Shown here one piece after another: positions 3,078 to 50,491 of a DNA stretch of 64,000 nt. The translations under genes and the position numbers were made by a program. The notes beneath the pieces were generated by a model. It was not told where the DNA came from. It made no database searches and was given only the letters and a program-made list of their open reading frames with translations. Each line of letters starts with the position of its first letter. Position 1 is the stretch's first letter. The DNA comes from Botryllus schlosseri (Eukaryota): contig CM119380.1 in NCBI GenBank assembly GCA_051294905.1, positions 20,646,001-20,710,000 on the forward strand, read 5' to 3'.

Positions 3078-5498
3078 TATATCTTCACGTATGATTTCGG
3101 TGGTTGTGATCAAGAGACGATGCCGACGATACCTTTCTCCTACAACGCTATTCCTTGTAAAATCTCAATGGACTTGGAACTCGACTTGCTGTTTAGTAAA
3201 GAGAGCACGATTTATCCAAGACGTAATGTGATGATATCGCATTGCTCCCTATGGGATACGTGCACATTCTTGAAGAAGACATCATCCACGCTTCGAACTA
3301 ATGAAACACAGCCTCTTGTTTATTGTGAGGCACGAAGCAGCTCTGCTGTGAGTCACCATCATACTCTCTCTACAGTTGCAAAAGGTGTAGATATTACATG
3401 TACGCCGTTGTGTGGTGTGGCAACTGAGTATCTTCAATCAATTCGTAGGAGCAAAGGAACAGAAGATTCAGAGTCTTGTCCTAGTACTTATACAAGTCCT
3501 GCGTTAGACAAAGTGATATCTTTTTGCTACATTGCGTGTGTTCGACCAGCTATTGACTGTATAAATAACTGTCCTTCTACGATGGGAGGTTGCTGCTGTG
3601 GGCTTCGGAAATCCAACGATGGCGCTCAGGATACATCGGAGATATTGTACTTCCCCTCGGACTACCATCGCTTTGTGCGGCATTCCGTTCCCGCGACAGA
3701 TGAATTAGTTCGGAAAAGGCGCAATGACTGTCATACAGCCCGCAGTGAGAGTTACATAGGACACGAATCAAAGCTACAACAACAGGGATGCTTGACAATG
3801 CCAAAAGATTTTTGCGTACTTCAGAAAAGTGCAGAAGATTCGAATGTTCCATCCACAAGAGATGACGGCTCACACCGATGTATAGTGAATGCGGATGATA
3901 CGATTAAGGAGGCTCCATGTCCCGTTACTTCTAGAAGCAGAAGTATAGAACCGCTTATTGTAGAAGAACAGTTTGGTGAATCATATTATCTATGGCTCGG
4001 CGTTCAGCATGAAGTAGCAGAGGATTGCGTTTCCCAAGATAAAGTACAACCTACCTCGCCTGTCAAACTATCCAATCAAGAAAACTTTTTCCTTTGTAAA
4101 GATCTTACTGATCCACGATGCTCTGTAGAATCAAATATTGCTTCCTGTACAAAAAATCTCGAAGTCACCAATTCTGAAGTGTTTATATCGCAGTTTAGAA
4201 ATACTGGAGATATTAAAGCAGAAATGAGTCGCACCTCTTCACTGCCAAATGAAGATACTGCCATTGATTTTGAAAAAGGGACATTCCATGATGATCACAG
4301 CAATGTTCTCATACGCGACACCCCTTTGGTAACATGTATCACTTCTGTATCGCATCCCACTTTAAAGAAACGTTACCTAGTGACTGAAGCATGGAAAAAA
4401 GGTTTGCTTGATTATGAAACGGCGGTGATACTATTGGAAGGCCAAATCCAAGCTGGTGGTATTGTGTCTATAGGGCCGTCTATTGTCGAAAAAGCACCCT
4501 GCCTTCATTTAGTCTCTGTGGTGGAAGCAAAACGTAAAAGCTTGATCGATACGAAGATGTATGATAGACTGAAACTCTTCGAGGACTCTGTAAAATGTGT
4601 TATTGCCGCTTCCCTGGAAGGTACTAGTAAATATAATTCGAAATCGAAGACTCAAATGCGGATGGTGCAACTACAATCTAATTTAGGAGGTATTATGGAC
4701 TTTACAAAGCTGGAACTTGTGACCTTGTCTGCCGGCGTTGAAAAGGGTTTGATCAGCGATGACATTGCTGTTGATTCTTTCAATAGACAAATTGTCAGTG
4801 GTGGTATCGTAAGCAGACTACCATTAAGTAGGCTACCTTTATCCGAAGCGGTGAATTCCTGTTTGATATCTCAGGAACATGCTGAAACTATGAAGCCTGT
4901 CGAGTTGCTATATCAAGGCATCGTCGACCCAATTTCTGAAGAAGGCACCACCTACGCAATGTGCGTTCGCAAAGGGTTGGTAACCAGAGAGGCGGTGGTT
5001 GATTTTCTATTTAAACAAGCCTTGCAACATGGAGGCTGGATCAGGAATTGCTTCACAAATGAGTGGCTGCCGATCTCTCGCGCAATGCATGAAGGAATGA
5101 TCGACATCAGCATGTGGACCGCTGTGGAACAAGCGTTATCGCAAAATAAGCAAGAAGCATCGTTGATCCATCCGTTTTGGTTGAGGCCAGTGTCATATTT
5201 TGACTTTCTGAAATCAGCAAATACAGAAGATGGGGACTTATCACGGTGCAAAGTAATCAGCGCTTGCGATATGTTCGATGGGATGTACGATTCTAGAAAT
5301 CAAGAAAGGATCTCCATTTTTGAAGCATTGAGAAGGGATATGACCGATCAACTCACAGCCAAACGCCTATTAAAGGCACAGTTAGACAGTGGAGGGTTGG
5401 TAGATATTGAAAACAAAGAAAGAATCCCGGTCAGTACAGCTTTAACCAGACAAGTTATCGATTTTCCGATGGCGATTTCTCTTGTGCAACAAGGCAAG
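3078..5498 (+). CDS. MACF1: Giant exon (807 codons): disordered Ser/Cys-rich segment followed by plectin (plakin) repeats
   Basis: Pyrimidine tract plus CAG acceptor at 3077, phase 0; open frame to donor AAG|GTAAGT. Plectin-repeat signatures include AWKKGLLDYETAVILLEGQIQAGGIV and LLKAQLDSGGLVDIENKERIPVSTALTRQVID. The ORF track starts at ATG 3120. Confidence 0.85.
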
Positions 5499-5746
5499 GT
5501 AAGTTATCTCGCATTTTTTAGGAGGTGAGTCTACTTTATGCATTAGTAAACACTAAACACTAATCTCTTGCTGTAGGCAACTGTTGCTGGTAATTTACAC
5601 TAAACTGAACACGTGCAGGTTTAGATTTCCTATACTTCCATGCATGTATCTTTTCGCAATTCGTGCACGTTACGATCGCTTTATATTCTACATTTATTTC
5701 CGAGTAAATATTTTCGGATCATGCAAACAATATGTATTAACACCAG

Positions 5747-9986: not shown

Positions 9987-10651
9987 GTATAATTCATTCG
10001 TTGGTTAATTTTTGTGTGATAGTTGTATTTCTATGTACAGCTCATTTGAGTGACAAATAATTCTAGTTCGGGTAGGTTAAATTCGTTTTAGTGACAATGC
10101 CGGTAATAGACGTATAATAGACTGATAGTTCAAGTTCATGTGGGGTAAAATTCATTTGAGTGTGCCAATGATGGTGCTCCTGGTGACAAAAATTCAAGTT
10201 CAGATATGGTCAAATTCATGAAGTGATAGTCCTGAGTATTCAATTGTGTAACGTGAAAAATCACTATTCTTTACCTTCATTCATTAAAGAACTTCCTTTA
10301 ATTGTGTTACTCAAATAATCACAAATCTATCACTGAGATGATTTGTCACTCTATTGAATAAAATAACACGTTTACATGTCCTAGTCAGAGAATTATATCT
10401 TTGTCGCTCAGTTGCTGCATCCAACCCAAATATGTATAGCGCATAGGCGTAGCCAGAAAGAAATGCTTGACACAATGTAACATTACCAATCTATTGTGAG
10501 TCGTTGATATCGTATCACAATGTTTTGGGTTGAAGGGTCGTGGGGGGGGTAATCATTTATTTATTCCAGTGGTTCTGTCAAATGCTCATGTGTGCATGTA
10601 AAACCGTCACGACTCTGATGATGCTTTTAATACTGGCCCTGTGGATATATA

Positions 10652-10696
10652 GCTGTATCAGCTGTATCAGCAGTATCTGCTGTATCAGCTGTATCA
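10652..10696. repeat. Tandem 9-mer GCTGTATCA, 5 copies
   Basis: Direct reading; one variant unit GCAGTATCT. Confidence 0.85.
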
Positions 10697-10818
10697 CCCT
10701 GTAGAAATCGTGCGTTCATGGCTGTATCTACTCCATGCCGGTACTAGAGGACTTGACTCTGCTCGCCAATCCAATATAAGCACACTCTTTGATGCTCAAC
10801 GTCTTTCTCGTACTCTAG

Positions 10819-11085
10819 GAATCACTATACGAAAACGCCGCACCTGAATTAAATGCCATCGGCGATTGCTTGGACGAACTCGATTTATTCCTGGACCGCG
10901 AGCGCTGCCGACTAGATGCGTTCAGGATCAATGAACTGATCGTGCTGTCTAGCGACCTGCGGGACCGTGTCCACGAAATCGAAAGAGCCCTGTCAACGGA
11001 TCACCAAGTCGTGATAACCACCCGAAAATCCATGATGGCCGGTGCCGGTCCACTGTCGGAGACATCGACGGAATCGTCTGACGGA
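10819..11085 (+). CDS. MACF1: Last cassette exon, degenerate spectrin repeat (3' boundary uncertain)
   Basis: TAG|ESLYENAAPELNAIGDCLDELDLFLDRERCRLD; weak donor GGA|GTAAAA; the ORF otherwise runs to a stop at 11217. Confidence 0.65.
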
Positions 11086-11800
11086 GTAAAATGTTTGAAA
11101 CACGCATGGGCTTCGTACTGCGTCGTTGACCGATGGACACGAACTGCACGGAATCCGCCTAATACTTTTCCATTTACTGTCGGTTGTTTGCAGCACCGTT
11201 ACCTTTGTGCGATTTAGATTAGGCACAATGCTTGTATTTTCAATTTACAACCACTTTACCGTGTCTTGCGAATATGTGTGCGATATCTAACTCACTTCGT
11301 TTGCTTATAAGCGCGGTTGCCATCAGCACGGGTAAAACTCTGAGGATAGGCAAACACTTTTGAGTGACTTAACTGCCAGAATTTGTACCCTGTTACACAT
11401 TTGAGAAAATGATATCAAAAAAGGTCATCACTATTGCCCAGTGCTAACCATGGCCTCATTACAATCTTGTCTAGTAGAAGCCTTCATTCGTATCATCTGT
11501 ATAACTATTATGACCTGTGTTCTGCTTTGAAGCTGAGGTCATAAGACTGAATCTTCTGAATAAAGATAATGTAGTTCTAAATCAGGACGAATGTTATTAG
11601 TAAGGATGGTATGGCAACCCTGCTTATAAGTGATAAAGTTACGTAGAGCCTCGGCATGAAGCATTCCTTTGTGGTTAGAATGTAAACGTTTTCAAACAGC
11701 ATGCTTGCACACGCCATGCCCGTTTATTTTCTTCTATTTTGCACCCACATCTCTGCCCAAATGTTATTCCTTGATGTTCACATTTTTGTTAACCGCTCAG

Positions 11801-11977
11801 TTTGCACTCGACGAGGGCCTTGCCAGTAATCTGGCTCGGTTGGAGGATTTGGATAAGGAAGCCGACGCGGTCGGAGATAAGTTGAGAGACATGTCCGAAG
11901 AGGTTGTTGACAGCAGAGTGGAGTCTCCGGAAGAAACAGACCTTGAACAACTGCAAAAGCAACTTGAAGAAATCATG
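11801..11977 (+). CDS. MACF1: Spectraplakin rod exon
   Basis: FALDEGLASNLARLEDL...QLEEIM|GTAAGA; phase 0-0. Confidence 0.85.
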
Positions 11978-12699
11978 GTAAGATCTCTTCACAGTTGGAA
12001 AATGTCGATGTTCTATGCATTCATATGTATGCGGAGGTGAGATGGTCAAATTAGTCAGCATTGGTGCTGGGCTAGAGAAATATGCAACACCGTAAATTTC
12101 TACTCGATTTCTAGTACCGTATAACTAGAGATTTTCAAGACATTTCAAAACTACTTGAATGAGAAGTAGAAAACGGTCTAAAAAGTAGATAAGTAAGCAG
12201 TTCCGAAATATATAAAATGTTCGCGGGTCTTAATTTTAGCGGTTAATCGGAGGCCTCTACTTTTGAAAATGCAAGATGCGTATTCACGACTAATGAAAAA
12301 TGGCTATTGACACTGTAAAGGATGCAATTTTTGGAAATAAATCCGACTACTGTGATACAGGGACTATTTCCCCAATTTTTACATGACAATTTCACTCGTA
12401 ATGGTGATACAAACATACCCACTGCTACTTTCTGGTTTACAAAATAAAAAATTTATAGAAGTATTTGACCCTAAAATTTGTGATGCAGAAGGGGGAGTAG
12501 ACCAAGACGTAACCACTTCAATAAGTAGTGCAATTAGGTAGAATTACTTGAGTACTCCAAAAAAGTAGTAGTACTTCATTACTGACCACTTCTGTTACAC
12601 ATCGTAGCTGTTTTGATACTGTCGATAGCTAAGTCAAGGCGGAAAGGTCTTATGCACATTATAATATTTATATTGACCAAAGTGAACATTTCTCTACAG

Positions 12700-12933
12700 G
12701 CTATCCAGGCCGGTGTTGCGTTCAAAAACCCAGAAGTTCAGGAGGCAACGACAGAAGCCGACGCCTTCGTTGATGAAAATGGCGACCGCCTGCAGCCCGA
12801 CTTGGCGGAAGAACTCAAACACGCCTCTTCCAGTTTGGGTCGCAAATGGGAGATCATGCAGGAGGCGGCGGAAGCCAAAATGACTCAACTGCAGGAGCAG
12901 CTGAGGTCGGCGCAAGACGTCGGACAGAGAAAG
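12700..12933 (+). CDS. MACF1: Spectraplakin rod exon
   Basis: AIQAGVAFKNPEVQ...SLGRKWEIMQ; phase 0-0. Confidence 0.88.
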
Positions 12934-13844
12934 GTAAAGTGCTGCAGAGGTCTCGAAATTATCAGTCATCGCCTGTGTTATGAAGTCCAGACCTAAAATC
13001 GGTGGTATAATAGAATGAATTTGTAACTGTTTACATTTTTTTGGTGTAATTAGAGTTTTTAAATTACCAAGGTAAAGTATATGACTCTCAAAAACAACGA
13101 GGAAGATTGAATATTTAGTGAACCATGAATTAACACTTTATCAATGAATAATATTTGTCGGAATGTCCGAAATCTACAAGGATGTTCTTACTGGATGGCT
13201 AGGTACTGAGAATATAATGTTTGTTATCTTTAGACTGCAGACTTGTACTGTGACGAACTGGTTATTGAGCAAAAATGTCGTAAATGATATGGTTTAATAA
13301 AATCAAATAATTTTACGTCAGGCGGGTAGCACACTGTGCGATTAATCTTTAGTTACTTGGCCAGTAACTGTATCTGCATTGCTCGTCGGTTGTCAGGATC
13401 TTAATTCCTAATCACTGAAGCAGCTAGAAATGGTCAGTAACGAAGCAGATCTAGGCTCCATAGTAGGCTACTCAAGTTTTGCCTACCCGCACTAACTTAC
13501 TAGAAAGGTATTAGACTACTCTCTTTTCACTATGCCGATTTTGCAAAGGAGAAATTAGGTCTGCATCGCCTTTGTGAAAGAAATTGTTGTCAGAACCGTG
13601 TGAAACTGCCTCTATGTCACGGTGACTACATGTTCAGAGATTGTACCTTTTTGTAGTTTCAATAACCATCTTGCTAATCCTACTTCTACTTGATTAGCAC
13701 TGCTGTTTCCTTCGGCCACCCCTGAAAGCATCTCGAATCTATCCAGAGATTGCTCCATTCTCCCTGGCCAGGATGGGTATAGGATATACATAACAATCAA
13801 TGTCTGGATCTTCACATCTTTATAACAAACACTTGTTGTTCCAG

Positions 13845-24262: not shown

Positions 24263-25054
24263 ATGGGAAACTCGTGCTGCAGTTGCCGCAAGGCCACCGA
24301 CGTGATAGGCGATGACATTCTCGAAGAGCGGCCGCACAAAGAAAAGAGAAAAATCCGGAAGAGAAAACGGAAATACAAACCCGCCGAGACTTCCGGTCCG
24401 GGCAAAGCGCTGTTACGTAACAACGGCAACGGCCAGTCACCGGTTGTATTAGAAGAGAAAGCCGAGAACTGTTCTGGCCAACCTTCCAAAAGAAGCTCGG
24501 ACGGGTCATTCGATAACGCGGTGTTTGTCCCGGATAAGTCCCTCGTTGATAACGTCATGAAATCCACTCCCGTGACTTCATCAACCGTAAATAAAGCCGA
24601 AAACGGGAAAACCATGACTCTGGGCAGTTACATGGAAGTTAGCGACATGGGGACTCAGTTATCGCCTGAGGCCGGTTGCTACGCGACGCAGGAACCGGAG
24701 GGAACCGGTTTTGCGAGTACTCCGGCTGACGCGGAGTATCCGTTCGCGCACAAACCCGGAGTTAAACCCGAAAAATCAGGCGGTAAATTGAGAAATAGCC
24801 ACTGTGATAACACTGTGAATTCGTACCCCTTCCTCGTAAACTCTTCAAGAGATATACTGGCGGAGCGCGCTATGTCTAAGAAGCTGCGCGCCGCCGTTAA
24901 CATGAAGTTTGTGACCCGCGGCCTGCGCGTGCCGGTTTATTACGTAATTGATGACGTCGTAGACGGCGACGATGACTCAAATTCGAAGAAGACCATGACT
25001 TTGCCGCGCGAGGACGAAGAAGACGAGGGTATCGACGCTACTGGGTTTAGCGAA
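24263..25054 (+). CDS. MACF1: Alternative first coding exon (264 aa) with N-terminal MGNSCCSC acylation motif and polybasic stretch
   Basis: AAACATGG start context; in-frame TGA at 24206 upstream; donor GAA|GTAAGG phase 0 matches acceptor 25550. Confidence 0.8.
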
Positions 25055-25549
25055 GTAAGGCAGCGGAATAATGCCTTTATGCTGGGCCCGAAATGCATAC
25101 TTTTTTACTTGGGAATCGCGACTTTTATACTTGGTCTACGACAGTCATTCGTTAGGCATTAGACAAATCATAATAATCGTGATCGCATTAAGCGGTTCTA
25201 TATTTTATACGCTCAACACACACACGATATACGATGCGATACAATTAGCAGCGACCGCACGTAATACCGGAAATCAAATTCTCTGTAAATGCAGGGACTA
25301 TTTTGTCCTTGGGACGTAATAATGTCGAAAACAACCAACGATATTCGAGTACCAACCACTTCGACCTCATCTTGCGTGCGAGTTGGCGTTCTCGCGATAA
25401 TCTTTACGAAACCTGATTCTTACATATGTCTGTGAGAAAGTTAGCGACATCTCTTCCTTACGTTACGTTATTTGTACCGTTGTGGACAGCATATTCCAAC
25501 GGGCCACTGTAAAACTCGCGCCTCGCTCTGCAATGTGGATTTATTTCAG

Positions 25550-44431: not shown

Positions 44432-45099
44432 GTACACATTAAAGTGTTGGTAAAGTGGATCTATTGAGTAGGTGTATAATGTATACCAATGGATACTATT
44501 TTCATATGCGCAGTGTTAACTGCCACCTTTTACACCATCCTCAGTCCTCAATTATTTCACATAACTACAGGTCCGAGTATAGGAGTGCGACCACCGTGAA
44601 CATTTAACGGCAACTGTTGATATTTTAAATCAAGTCACTCCAGTTCTAGCGATTCCTTTCCGGATAGTCGATTTATAGCTTTTTGTGCATTCATCAAACT
44701 CATATATCGTAAGTAACACCGTATCAGAAGATTATTGTGTAGCGGAATTCTGAAAATTTCAGTGAACAATATATATGTCACTGGCTCCTACTTTTATTAG
44801 TATCCTATACAACTATTTCGCAGTTGGAACTTGGAAGTTTCTATTTAAATCACTCATTCATAATGATAAATACCAAACACATGCCAGAAGTGTGGGTGCC
44901 ATGGCGACCTTTGTTCTACTCTGTTCTACCCTTGATAGTGCCGTGATGTATTTATACACAGAAATAATGTATCTCAATGTTCTGTAATTGTGCGCGTAAT
45001 TGCCATCATGATGTCATAGATATTCCCAATGACGACGATATCTTCATCACATTGTCACAAGGTCTTGGCTCGTTTTGTAATGTGTTTCCACCACTTCAG

Positions 45100-45300
45100 A
45101 CAATCAAACCAGACGAGTACGAACCCAGCGTCAAAACGGTCAAAAAATGCACAAAGGAGCTGTCACGATATGCGTCTCGCTGGGGAGAAGAACCGCTACA
45201 ATCTGTTGCCGCCGATGACGAAGCCAGATTCAACGCACTGAAGGACGCCCTGGGCCGATACCAGGCGTCCAAGAAACAGGCTGAAGAAAAGCTGGCGGCA
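45100..45300 (+). CDS. MACF1: Spectraplakin rod exon
   Basis: TIKPDEYEP...SRWGEEPLQSVAADDEARF...EKLAA; phase 0-0. Confidence 0.82.
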
Positions 45301-46318
45301 GTATGTTCCGTTTTGTTACCATTGGTGATTTTGCTGGTGTTAGTCTTACGACTTGATTTGCTCAAGAAAGGCTCCTTTGTCACCTAGCCAGTTGTTAGGC
45401 GCGGGTGAAGGGAAATATGTGGTTGCGTGGATACAGGTTGTGAACTTGGACAGGCAGTGAGAATATAGATTTTGAGAAATTCAGTGTTGGCTTGGTCTGG
45501 GAGAGGGTAGGTTGTGGCAGTCAAGTAACGGGAGCCGTGGAGAATATACATTATTAAGCAGCCAGGCATTTGTATTATCTGGAAAATAGGTTGAAAATAA
45601 CTCATGGTGTTTAACTTGAAGATTCTCCTGCATTTTGAACAGGGTTGTAAGGTCTTGTTAGAATTGGAGCATTGTTTACTTCGTAAACAGTATTTAATAA
45701 TTGCTTTTATAATCCTATAGTTCCGCTGTTAAGACTTTTCAAATCATGTGAAAAGTAGGTTCTATGTCAACAAACAATACGTTCAAATTGCCAAATTTAT
45801 TCCTCATGGACCCTTTTCGTCTGAGTCTCATCAGCGATCGGTTGTCACTCAATGTGGCTAGCCAAATTTGAAATATAGAACGAAGGTTCTCGTTAAGTCG
45901 TACTTCGAATTTGGTTAATCTCATGTACTAACGTTCGCTCCTGATGATGGTGCTTTGAGTGGAATAAATTTGGCAATATGAACTTATTGTTAGTTGCGAT
46001 GTTGAGGTATCGTACTTCGAGAAGCCTCTTTTTTTGTTTGACACTTGCGTCTTACCTTGCCTGGATAGCATGGCAGCGAACCTTAGTCACACGCTTCGCA
46101 TGAAACCATTAGAAAATGCGTGTCGGAATTCCCGTTGAACACTGCATAATCAATCTCCAAAAGTTCCTTAGTTCAAATTTTGGATCTGGCAACTAGGATT
46201 ACTGTATCAGTTCTCCATTCAAAGCAATGAACCTGGTTTTCACGTCGGCGATGTCGTAAGTAGTTGATTACCCGATATTGATCTACTGGTTTCAGACTTA
46301 GCCTAGCAGTAGTTCGCC

Positions 46319-46684
46319 ATGTTTTCTTACAATAAAAAAGTGCGATTGAAACCGTACGAAGTCCTGCCGCTGTCTGATTTCCACGTTGACCCCGACGCTC
46401 CCCCGCTGCGCATGCGCGCGCGCCCCGGGAAGATGTTTGCCTCGCACAGCAGGGCCGATCTAGCGCACGATTTCAACTCGCGCAACGAAATGGTGGCGCC
46501 CATGAACTTGCGAAGGCCCAAATCCGCGATGGAACTTTCCGACGCGAGCGCGCGAGATTTCGAGTCACGTGACTTCCGTTACGTCGCCGACGGCGTGCAC
46601 GACGAAATCGCGGAGAGCTCGAAAGAGCTGATCGAGTGCTTGCCGAAAATGACGGCTGTCAAGCCAGAGAAAAAGGAAGAGAGC
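46319..46684 (+). CDS. Nested cassette exon 1 (initiating; MFSYNKKVRL...)
   Basis: GCCATG start; in-frame TAG at 46310; upstream acceptor TTTCAG at 46295; donor AGC|GTGAGT phase 0. Confidence 0.75.
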
Positions 46685-47373
46685 GTGAGTATCTATCAAT
46701 CGGCCCTGTTCGGTTCGCAGTAGCTACGTAGATGGTACGAGAATGCGCCGGATATTACCGTGGTTTCTAATTTCTGCCTCTCTCAATATCTAATATTTTG
46801 TGTGCTTACGGAAACTAGACAATTCACAGTGTCTCGAATATTCGTTTTTTATCAATTCCTGATTGCAGAATAGTGATTTCGATATAGCATTTCAAGGTGG
46901 TATCTATACCGATGTTAACAATTTCCCCGGCTTTATTCGCATCAACTCATGATTCTAAATTCTCTCTCCAATTCTCTCTACAAGCGATATTATCTTAAAC
47001 TAGAGTTGGTCTGTAACTCAATTAGGTTAGGCTTACCTACTCGCGCTACCTGCGCAATTAGTTATAATTTTAGACTACACCTACTTCTATACATTTTAGT
47101 TTGCGGTTTTTTAGGCAAACCTAGGACTACTTTCATTGAAATCGATGATTTTACTTCACCAATAATTAGTTGCGTTACGTTATAACAGAGTACAATTGAG
47201 GAATAACAATTTAGCTACCTCTGTCAATAACGGTGTATTGTAATTGCGGTACTGGTAGTGTCTGTCAAGCATATCGGCCCATATGTTACGCTCGAAACGA
47301 CAATGTAACGGAATTTCGATTTTCTCTTTACAAAATGCTGTGATTATCACCGACTACATTTCCACATCTTCAG

Positions 47374-47465
47374 AAAGATTCGTTACCTTTGGACACACCG
47401 GCAACCGCTACGCGCGATTGCATGATGGTATATCCACAAAACACGGTGCCGATGGCTAAATACAG
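47374..47465 (+). CDS. Nested cassette exon 2
   Basis: CTTCAG|KDSLPLDTP...MAKY; phase 0-2. Confidence 0.62.
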
Positions 47466-47532
47466 GTGTGTATCCACACCGCGTACTACCAGTAAAGGTG
47501 TAAATCACACGCTAATCATGGGTCCTTCGCAG

Positions 47533-47719
47533 AAGGAAAATATCCGGCGAGTTACCGGATAGTGACGATGATGAAGCTCCTATGACCGATGCACAAAGGT
47601 GGAGCAAAGAGAAAACGCTTGAGTCCGAGTATAATCCTGGAAAAAACTCTCGCCGGAAGCGAAAACCGAGTCTATGGGCGGATCCGGATCCGGATGGAAA
47701 AAAGGCTTATGACCTTAAC
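47533..47719 (+). CDS. Nested cassette exon 3
   Basis: RKISGELPDSDDDE...KKAYDLN; phase 2-0, after a 67-nt intron. Confidence 0.65.
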
Positions 47720-47778
47720 GTATGGTGTTATGGTATTATTAATAAAGTTGAATATTACTAATAGCAATTTGCTATCAG

Positions 47779-47941
47779 GATCAAATACAAAAGCCTACTT
47801 ACATGGGTGAAGAGAGTATGGATGGCGAGACTATATCCACCCTGATCAATAAAGGATCTCGCCGAAAATCGTTCGCTGCCATAGGCACCATGGTGGCGAA
47901 ACTGAAAAAACGCAGGCAATCGGCCGGATATGACGAAAAAG
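47779..47941 (+). CDS. Nested cassette exon 4
   Basis: DQIQKPTYMG...RRQSAGYDEK; donor G|GTAAGA; phase 0-1. Confidence 0.7.
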
Positions 47942-48197
47942 GTAAGACTTGTCCGCAGAGGTAGACCAAGTAATCGTCGTTGGTGGTGAGGGAGAAGTAA
48001 CGACCTAGCGAATTTCCAAATAAGTGTTCTAGGCCTAGTTTTGGCTAAAATCATAGTCACTTAGTAAGTAGTGTAATTAGTCAATACATACTTGAGTGCA
48101 CCGAAAAAATATAGGTACTTCGTTCCTGACCGGTGATCACCTTTGCTCGTCCGTCCATTCAAAAAGCTTTTACATATACTGACATTATTCTTTTCAG

Positions 48198-50056
48198 ATG
48201 CCGACGAAATTTCAATTGTCGAACCCAAGAAACCCACAGTCGTGAAATTCAACATTCCGGACGACGAGGGTGGCAAGGCTTCCTCTGTATCTAACGAACA
48301 CACTCCCACCGAGGACTTGAGCAAAGTCGATTTGACTATGCCCCCTGCGCAATTCATGGACACCAGCACGATGATATCTTACAGCGAAACGCTGGTGCAT
48401 AGAATCGTTAACGACCGCAGAACCCCGGAAAACGTACTCAGTTTTCCCGCGCCGGCTCCGGTTATCACCCCGGCTCCGGTTTTCTCGCTATCCGCCATCC
48501 CAGAACACGACCGCGCCGAGACGGTCACTCCAAAAAACGCGAACGCACCGGTTTTTATCCGCCCGCCGGAGTCTCCGTTTGATAAATCCGATGACGCCAT
48601 CAGCGATGACGATTTATCCAGCGGGCGCCGCTCGCGGCGTCATAAGCGCCAGCGCAGTCGTGGTTACAGCCGAAATTACGGCAGCACGGCTGAGTTGAAT
48701 GACCCTGAATCCGAGAGAGAACGGCGCAAGCGACGCGAAGCGAAGCGTCTACACAGCGCGAAACGCGAAAGCGAGCGAGCGCGCGTGCAAAAGAGAAAAA
48801 GTTCGCGCAAGTCTCGCCGGCGCGGTAGCGATGTGAGAGAGAAAGTACGCCTTGACCGTCTAGATCGCGCTAAATCAGAGCGCAGAGATAGCAGCGAATC
48901 AACGGAGGAAGAGTCCTTTTTTAAATTTGCCTCCTTTCTAAAAGGCGGCGACGCCAAGTCTTCAGGCTTGAGCAAATCTGAGTCGTTCGCTATAGAGAAC
49001 ATAGCCCGCAAACTTATCAATCTCGTACAACAGAACGGCGATGCTAACGCGGAAGTCGGCACCGATTCGGATGTAGCCTTAATAGGGAAAGATACGGCTA
49101 CTCCAGTGCCACATCAAGCACAGTCCAATTACAATACAAACATGATCGATAATGTAGATTCAACGCCGCTGATTCAAAACACAGTACAGTCAGACGCTCA
49201 GTCTGTGAGCACCAACTCGAATTGGCAACAAAATCAGAATTTTAACACGCCTAGCCGGCAACCGTCTATAACAGCCAACCCCGCGTGTCCTACAACTTCT
49301 CTCGTCACCGTAGTAAAACCGGACGACCTCCTGTCCGTCGCTGATATTTTCGAACCGAGAGACGGCGCCACACTCAAAACGGTCGTCCGCTTGCCGACCC
49401 TGCAACCGCGGGAAGGCGAAAACGAGGCCGCGCTACGCAGTAGGGTTGAAGATTTTCTAAACGGAAAAACGGAAGAGGGCGACTCGCATTTTCAGCAGGT
49501 ACCCGGCAGACGTTGGGTCGCGGAGTGGGCCAGGCGTGAGGAAGTGATAGGCAAGGCTGCCGAACGCGCTGAAAGCAAAAAAATCAAACGCAAACGTAGT
49601 TCTATCACGCGAAAACGCAGTATAAAGCGCAGCCCTTCAACCAACAGCATCGGCACCTTTTTCAGTAAGCTGTTCGGTAAATTACGCATTGATGAAGATA
49701 CCTCGGAACACAAAAACACGGAAGTCGTGGCCTGTGTTTACGCTGTCAATGAGAACGACATCACGCGACGTAATGACGTCACAATACCCGCTAGCACACA
49801 ACCAGTAGTAACCCCGGCGGCAGATACATCGACGTATGTAAACGCGCGTGGCAACGCTAGCACACAGCAGCCTATGTTGAATCGCTCTGTTTCTAAAGTC
49901 ACGTTTTTGGATGAGATAGCCCGCAGTAAAGATTCCGGGGTGTTATCTGACATGGGGCTTGAATCTGTGGATGAATACGGGCGGAGTCAAATCAAGTCCG
50001 GTGGCCCTACGCGACCTTGGGCGGCCGGAACTGGGCAGAGACACGGTATACGTTAA
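48198..50056 (+). CDS. Nested cassette exon 5 (terminal; disordered, Arg/Lys/Ser-rich)
   Basis: TTTTCAG|AT phase 1; 619 open codons to TAA; AATAAA at 50159-50164. Confidence 0.78.
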
Positions 50057-50158
50057 ACAGTGAATTCCGTCGTTAATTAGTTCAATATGTACAATACATT
50101 ATACAGCTCTCTCTTTATTTTCAAATACATTGATATTTCGAATGTGTGTGTTTATCTT

Positions 50159-50164
50159 AATAAA
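50159..50164 (+). terminator. Polyadenylation signal AATAAA of the nested cassette
   Basis: Canonical hexamer about 100 nt after the TAA, in an AT-rich UTR-like stretch. Confidence 0.5.
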
Positions 50165-50368
50165 TATATGAACCGATTTCAAGGCATTAGGGCTGTTTTT
50201 GTCGCGAACTGATATCTAGCCATTTAACAGGCACTGGCATCGCTATGGTAGCGGATATATTTAGAGCAATTTAGTTTCGGGGACAAGGTCGAACTGTTGT
50301 AAATGGGCAGGGCTATTGTCCAGCTCTACACACGTTTGGATTTTGAGATTTTTATTTGTTATTCACAG

Positions 50369-50491
50369 TTCATGGAGCACGCGGACGCGTGTATGGCGGG
50401 ACTGAATGACATTTCGTCACGCTTGGACGACCTTCGCAATATGACGTCACTTGACCCGGAATACTTGAAATCCGCGACCGGGGATCACAAG
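50369..50491 (+). CDS. MACF1: Spectraplakin rod exon
   Basis: FMEHADACMAGLNDISSRL; phase 0-0. Confidence 0.85.

Follow-up and report, generated by a model that had tools for sequence, protein, structure and literature searches.

We analysed 64,000 nucleotides (nt) of Botryllus schlosseri DNA (GCA_051294905.1, contig CM119380.1, positions 20,646,001 to 20,710,000 of the forward strand), hereafter the window, and identified five exons that probably form a stand-alone protein-coding gene, located wholly within one phase-0 rod intron of a spectraplakin gene and on the same strand as this host. By sequence comparison, the nested gene is old and conserved, occupying the orthologous intron of the host in each of three deeply diverged species. 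Its product belongs to an unnamed protein family that has neither a Pfam entry nor a recognisable fold, and that is characterised by a compact conserved module and short motifs. As far as the literature shows, the recognition of a family with a conserved module and its conserved residence in one spectraplakin rod intron across very distant species are new, while the Styela clava gene, present in RefSeq as an uncharacterised protein, and the sense-nested arrangement as such were already known. A literature search found no paper combining "nested gene" and "spectraplakin".

The host was identified as a spectraplakin by an 802-codon exon with plectin repeats (3120-5528) and by the spectrin repeats encoded by the exons around the nested gene. 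RNA contigs and reads splice the rod exon upstream of the nest (45095-45300, + strand, ending in phase 0) directly to the downstream one (50369-50491, + strand, starting in phase 0 and encoding the motif F[MY]EH...TSL.P[ED][YH][LI]K), with contig depths of 110 and 55. The whole nested unit therefore lies inside one 5068-nt phase-0 rod intron (45301-50368). Host exons and nested frame are both on the + strand, and the same-strand nesting in a rod intron that an earlier note on this DNA had proposed was borne out by this host junction, which spans the unit.

The nested gene was reconstructed from five exons on the + strand: exon 1 (46319-46684, amino acids (aa) 1-122), exon 2 (47374-47465, aa 123-153, ending in phase 2), exon 3 (47533-47719, aa 153-215), exon 4 (47779-47941, aa 216-270) and exon 5 (48198-50056, aa 270-888 plus the stop), the last being a 618-codon open exon that encodes 70% of the protein. 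Spliced together they amount to 2667 nt, yielding 888 codons and a single terminal stop. All four introns are bordered by GT..AG with pyrimidine-rich acceptors, and the GC content is 0.47-0.57 in the exons as compared with 0.25-0.49 in the introns. The start codon (ATG, 46319) is marked by a G at position -3 and a TAG in frame 9 nt upstream, and the TAA stop is located at 50054-50056. The only AATAAA between this stop and the host exon at 50369 (50159-50164) lies 103 nt past the stop, in a 3' untranslated region (UTR) that we delimited approximately to 50057-50185 on the + strand. The host intron 45300/50369 is in phase 0, as are the ends of nested exons 1 and 3. The five-exon, 888-aa frame, the ATG and AATAAA of its own and the phase arithmetic, all put forward in the earlier note, thus proved correct.

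The nested frame is under purifying selection and its product is selected as a protein. We compared the contigs of one RNA run (X10) with the window and listed 33 differences in exon 5, among which 18 are synonymous and 15 non-synonymous, for an expectation of 23.5% synonymous (binomial p=1.1e-4). Third codon positions account for 20 of the 33, and only 7 and 6 of the 33 would be synonymous in the other two frames of the exon. Between 48391 and 48553 there is a run of eleven silent changes, and the replacement variants concentrate in the Arg/Ser-rich block described below.

An exhaustive phmmer search with the exon-5 protein as a query against 1.84 billion cluster representatives (E<=0.001), a type of homology check that the earlier note had suggested, returned three relatives: P0001 (886 aa, E=3e-50), P0002 (590 aa, E=8e-20) and P0003 (365 aa, E=3e-14). 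P0001 is the Styela clava "uncharacterized protein LOC120333739" (XP_039257024.1, 886 aa), for which a newer RefSeq model of 1030 aa was retrieved (P0004, XP_077965717.1), the Styela orthologue being modelled as a separate gene in both RefSeq releases. The window protein and P0004 align end to end with 39.6% identity over 856 columns, from a shared first Met (first residues MFSYNKKVRLKPYE and MMLSYNKKVRLKPFE, respectively) to a C-terminal SKDSG...S.DE motif. The older Styela model begins MPQNTVPMAKYRKKI and crosses the predicted exon 2/3 junction of the window (PQNTVPMAKYR|RKI). With a full-length Styela orthologue and relatives from two further sources, the description of this protein as an orphan in the earlier note fails. 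Word-indexed protein searches, using either exon 5 or the alignment of the four sequences, gave no match, yet low-complexity words dominated them and they missed the known Styela protein, so that they were uninformative. We also noted that P0003 is carried by a Logan contig (L004) whose positions 1-40 are a Nextera-type adaptor remnant (GDVYKRQ when translated) and whose frame is already open where the contig begins. P0003 is thus the C-terminal end of a longer protein of this family and not a complete one of 365 aa. Separately, a Met pair in exon 2 (aa 139-140) coincides with the point at which the older Styela model begins (MPQNTVPMAKYR), and for this reason a shorter isoform initiating in exon 2 is conceivable.

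We then mapped P0004 on the Styela genome, resulting in five exons whose four intron positions all coincide with those of the window model, including both positions that border exon 4. The exon-2 donor falls inside the Arg codon of AKYR (AATACAG|GT) in window and Styela alike, exon 2 is 69% identical to positions 10475-10552 of the Styela locus (L002), and exon 1 aligns from residue 1 with both P0004 and positions 1350-1667 of L003, a 7.8-kb unspliced contig from another organism. Because the Styela intron positions coincide, the junctions 46684>47374, 47465>47533 and 47941>48198 are supported by homology. The surroundings are conserved as well. In the 23-kb locus L002, the Styela orthologue (10001-13430) is enclosed by a gene on the same (+) strand with a product of 8160 aa, which exceeds both ends of the locus, and the open frames around it match the rod exons of the window, in order. 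The upstream host exon (45095-45300) is 71% identical to L002 9087-9287 and 65% identical to L003 353-556, both of which directly precede the orthologous nested gene, and the downstream host exon (50369-50491) is orthologous to L002 14331-14453 and L003 6616-6738. L003 contains a host exon, the five nested exons and two host exons in the same order, and in L002 and L003, as in the window, the phase of the host intron is 0. The four available sequences of the module are about equidistant (37-48% identity) and thus come from deeply separated lineages. Given its presence in the same spectraplakin intron of Styela, the unit is best described, on the basis of these alignments, as an old conserved nested gene and not as an orphan. 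Taken together, an open 618-codon exon, the excess of synonymous differences and orthologues elsewhere are far beyond what chance would produce. In the Styela host, an EF-hand exon (DKDGFIDYYEFVAAL; L002 22985-23254) was observed about 9.5 kb 3' of the nested gene, which therefore sits in the distal rod, near the microtubule-binding end.

Four RNA runs were searched for junctions, the raw-read runs being read to 6-13% (6% for X18). X1 and X10 hold spliced host contigs and are therefore both RNA. X1 contigs were found only on exon 1 (46324-46581, with a start at about 46317-46324) and on exon 5 (pieces within 48552-49597), with a depth of 4-9 on the nested exons versus 55 on the host, the introns being bare except for two dispersed repeats. 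In a word-index query confined to exon 5 and the UTR, in which X1, X2, X4 and X6 come from two studies, essentially all matched words of the 3869-nt stretch of the nested unit fell in exon 5 for the transcriptome-sized X2, X4 and X6, and about 84% for X1. For X2, the number of words in the whole stretch (0.15x399) is about that in exon 5 (0.29x204). The junction 47719>47779, between exons 3 and 4, was observed in an X10 contig and is the one junction of the nested gene seen in RNA. In X18, which consists of stranded raw reads, about 3 reads lie on exon 5 and the 3' UTR and agree in mate orientation with the two reads of this run on the host junction, and the raw-read depth in the bin 50038-50231 is 0.93. 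The dominant RNA form of the locus is the host skip 45300>50369, with contig depths of 55-110 as compared with 4-15 for the nested exons.

Several of these data weigh against an independently expressed gene. The X10 contig with the 47719>47779 junction is unspliced from 47183 through intron 2 and hence represents an incompletely processed molecule; X10 also covers host-intron sequence at a depth of 6-10, part of its signal being host pre-mRNA; and the raw-read runs provide about 3 reads on the nested gene in total. The junctions 46684>47374, 47465>47533 and 47941>48198 have homology and no reads behind them, and no read in the runs examined marks the transcription start or the poly(A) end of the nested gene. 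Finally, the nature of runs X1-X9 is a guess from the index, though X1 has spliced host contigs. As a side observation on the region 47389-47562 and the X10 contig (47183-47719), retention of the 67-nt nested intron 2 leaves the frame open through the intron and then shifts it, with a stop at 47560-47562.

The best explanation nevertheless is, in our judgement, a nested gene with a start and an end of its own. Its transcription probably begins at a promoter in the host intron, just upstream of 46319, and is followed by four splicing events, with the AATAAA at 50159 directing 3' end formation some 205 nt ahead of the host acceptor. Host polymerases would traverse the unit, which the host spliceosome would discard within the 5068-nt intron. 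An own start is favoured because conservation begins at the exon-1 Met, with the in-frame TAG immediately before it; the use of a promoter and of a poly(A) site by the nested unit are steps that we infer. The ratio of observed to expected CpG is uniformly high, at 1.16 over the whole window, and provides no pointer to an internal promoter. A palindrome (GCGCATGCGCGCGC, 46408-46421) was noticed in nested exon 1, about 90 nt 3' of the ATG; it encodes LRMRAR and resembles an NRF1-type promoter element, and may be a piece of an internal promoter or a mere reflection of Arg codons.

The explanation that survives best next to this one, and that we consider unlikely, holds that the five exons are mainly alternative exons of the spectraplakin, the stand-alone protein being secondary. 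Two routes would be available: a "tail" (45300>47374), in which the rod ends early and a disordered basic C-terminus replaces the EF-hand/GAR microtubule-binding end, and a "head" (46684 or 47719>50369), which starts a short rod-plus-tail isoform. Spectraplakin loci have many alternative starts and ends, the phases of the host intron and the nested exons fit, with the phase-0 host intron and the phase-0 end of exon 1 also present in Styela, and the X10 contig that begins at 47183 represents RNA molecules whose exon 2 has not been spliced to exon 1. However, orthologous introns keep their phases anyway, and since the orthologues have the same phases, the head and tail match is simply inherited. 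No host-to-nested junction of either type was found in the four RNA runs, in which exons 2-4 are nearly uncovered and of which the raw ones were read to the extent given above; the sole observed junction that touches a host exon is the plain host skip 45300>50369. Conservation begins exactly at the exon-1 Met, behind the in-frame stop, and RefSeq treats the Styela orthologue as a separate gene in its two releases. That head or tail chimeras are a major product is, in our view, unlikely, although rare ones may have escaped this thin coverage. The picture of a modular head/tail cassette in the spectraplakin locus, for which there is so far no evidence, is thereby corrected.

An expressed and functionless intronic open reading frame (ORF), whose RNA would be host pre-mRNA only, is very improbable. 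The X10 depth of 6-20 over intron and exon alike would agree with it, but X1, X2, X4 and X6 hold almost exclusively exon sequence, and 40% protein identity across species together with the synonymous excess require translation and selection. A decaying or domesticated transposon or retro-copy whose frame is open by chance is effectively refuted: the intronic location, the low-complexity composition, the lack of a Pfam domain and an element resembling a miniature inverted-repeat transposable element (MITE) nearby (45768-45996) speak for it, but the 495-Mb assembly contains a single copy of the exon-5 DNA and a single one of the module protein, the unit has neither direct nor inverted repeats at its flanks (the 45768-45996 element being the sole inverted repeat of the intron), its four introns have positions common to Styela, its differences show the synonymous excess, and the nested protein resembles neither the host nor the remaining window. 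The ORF is thus not the recognisable transposon fragment that, according to the earlier note, would have refuted it, being single-copy, free of flanking repeats and without a Pfam match. An origin of the nested protein from host exons was also considered and rejected, there being no similarity to the rest of the window.

The predicted protein has 888 aa, about 99 kDa, an isoelectric point of 9.2 and a grand average of hydropathy of -0.91, and three quarters of its residues are disorder-promoting; none of its hydrophobic segments is of sufficient length to cross a membrane. Its Arg/Lys/Ser-rich basic segment (48620-48889, + strand, aa 411-500), which the earlier note had already pointed out, is real, with 37 K+R, 14 D+E and 13 S in 90 residues. 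In Styela and in L003 the composition of this block is kept and its sequence is not. A long helix is predicted in it (exon-5 residues 169-203), followed by disorder. The other exons contribute short conserved blocks: an N-terminal M-[FL]-SYNKKV[RK]LKP and a second block EIAESS.ELIE.LP.M.AVK in exon 1; DSPAT..DC..V.PQNTVPM[AS]KYR in exon 2; RKI...PDSD...TDAQ.W.K and RRK.SLWA.PD in exon 3; and I.KPTY and a basic site, RRKS[FL]A.IG..V.KL.KR (RRKS at aa 243), in exon 4. Further conserved short motifs are MDT..MIS[YF]SE.LV, PVFIRPPES.F.K.DD and a C-terminal DSG, the latter belonging to a motif S[KR]DSG...S.DE (49925-49975, + strand) that reads DSGVLS in the window, SKDSGMYDGPSSDSLDE in Styela and SRDSGLPEDPNSSDSLDE in P0003.

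A conserved C-terminal module was delimited (49370-49759, + strand, aa 661-790), with 28 invariant columns in four species and a pLDDT (see below) of 82-93 in its core. AlphaFold was run on exon 5, resulting in a predicted local distance difference test score (pLDDT) below 50 for 442 of the 618 residues. Helices are predicted in the basic block as well as in FFKFASFL and IARKLINLV, two amphipathic stretches that are conserved, and there is a single confident core (exon-5 residues 391-450 and 505-525, pLDDT 69-93). The module modelled alone (aa 655-800; mean pLDDT 65.8, predicted template-modelling score 0.52) begins with a strand and two helices, to which a beta hairpin and a short helix are added; a disordered loop of about 45 residues comes next and leads to a long beta element and a helix. 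In the loop (pLDDT <50), a polybasic Ser/Thr stretch (KIKRKRSSITRKRSIKRS) is followed by a short amphipathic Phe-rich segment (IGTFFSKLFGKL), and all four species have retained its basic residues, its serines and the spacing of its aromatics. The models thus predict one small alpha/beta module, interrupted by a polybasic Ser-rich loop, in an otherwise mostly disordered protein.

The statement in the earlier note that no domain is recognised stands: no Pfam match was obtained with any piece of the window protein or with the three relatives, a sequence-profile search of the PDB found no solved relative, and a feature search of the ESM Atlas gave no match. Searches with the module fold (Foldseek against PDB, AlphaFold database clusters and Swiss-Prot; VIA-align in its wide mode; ESM Atlas) returned background only, with best scores of VIA Z 4.8, Foldseek E=0.04 and TM 0.44. 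SEA-domain-like sandwiches (Z 4.5-4.8) were the top rows and Tctex/Tda2, longin and DENN rows were also inspected (root-mean-square deviation >15 A or TM <0.35), and no fold was assigned from either group.

As to function, we tentatively propose a phosphorylation-switched basic adaptor, a possibility suggested by the sequence. Through its basic segments it would attach to an acidic surface (membrane phosphoinositides, microtubule tails or nucleic acid), from which these segments would detach once RRxS-type basophilic-kinase sites are phosphorylated, and the conserved C-terminal DSG motif may control turnover of the protein. MARCKS-type effector domains are polybasic, Ser-rich and Phe-bearing, and their binding to membranes or calmodulin is switched by phosphorylation; the loop KIKRKRSSITRKRSIKRS...IGTFFSKLFGKL similarly has a basic cluster, basophilic-kinase Ser sites and aromatics. 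However, there is no sequence homology between the two (no Pfam match) and the window segment is a loop inside a folded module, so the likeness is one of composition only and serves as a lead. It counts against the adaptor that composition and motifs are all it draws on, that the structure prediction used an alignment of four sequences only and that the fold searches yielded nothing above background.

The closest known counterpart is Styela LOC120333739, which shares with the window gene the N-terminal Met motif, the five exons, the conserved blocks, the strand and the host intron. It is longer, with insertions in disordered parts, its basic Arg/Ser block is alike in composition only and, being uncharacterised, it names the family without explaining its function. 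In the cholinergic locus, the first intron of ChAT harbours VAChT in sense orientation, an arrangement kept across very distant animals; VAChT is intronless, has upstream exons or promoters in common with ChAT and acts in the same pathway. The window gene is likewise a sense protein-coding gene in a host intron, conserved at distance, but it has four introns, no common exon was seen and no functional link to its host is shown.

Among vertebrates, human KIAA0754 (NM_015038, one exon) is annotated within MACF1, on the 3' side of its exon 52 (p.Asn3144), with one variant attributed to KIAA0754 and MACF1 both (PMC4450850, Table 2), so that a long ORF lies within the rod part of a vertebrate spectraplakin. 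It consists of one exon, in contrast to the five of the window gene. The exon-5 phmmer search, at the database size and threshold given above, found no vertebrate similarity and only the three invertebrate relatives, which covers KIAA0754 indirectly, its own sequence not having been compared. The literature that names KIAA0754 together with MACF1 consists of association studies without structural information. KIAA0754 is presumably on the same strand as MACF1 and of low complexity. A joint reading, in which the spectraplakin and its nested gene are functionally coupled in an ancient locus and have stayed together at least since the split of the window and Styela lineages, and KIAA0754 is a much-diverged occupant of the same intron, is doubtful. 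Were it true, the sense promoter, splice sites and poly(A) sites of the nested unit would tune the end of the host transcript or the splicing of its rod, giving for example rod-truncated spectraplakins without the microtubule-binding end, or the nested basic protein would partner its host at the cytoskeleton.

A gene nested in sense orientation has to be compatible with the splicing and polyadenylation of its host. In a mammalian survey, an orthologue in other species was found for only 16-21% of nested genes, most host/nested pairs being young (PMC11694760). A multi-exon sense-nested gene retained in one intron of a giant gene at about 40% protein identity provides a natural test between trapped and regulatory nesting, and the compact module and clear short motifs offer concrete experimental handles on the unnamed family.

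We finally noted three further features of the host locus. The MITE-like element in the host intron 5' of the nested gene (45768-45996, 229 bp) has 36-nt terminal inverted repeats that are 92% complementary and 157 nt apart. RNA reads and contigs of all four runs accumulate on it and continue into flanking sequence that is unrelated on both sides, identifying it as a dispersed repeat transcribed elsewhere. A segment of about 33 nt in nested intron 4 (48019-48051), from which X18, X10 and X1 reads or contigs likewise run into unrelated flanks, represents either a further dispersed repeat or some shared motif. Further upstream, at 24263-25162 on the host strand, a 299-codon frame without a Pfam match starts with MGNSCCSCRK, of the N-myristoylation/palmitoylation type, and continues with a polybasic stretch.

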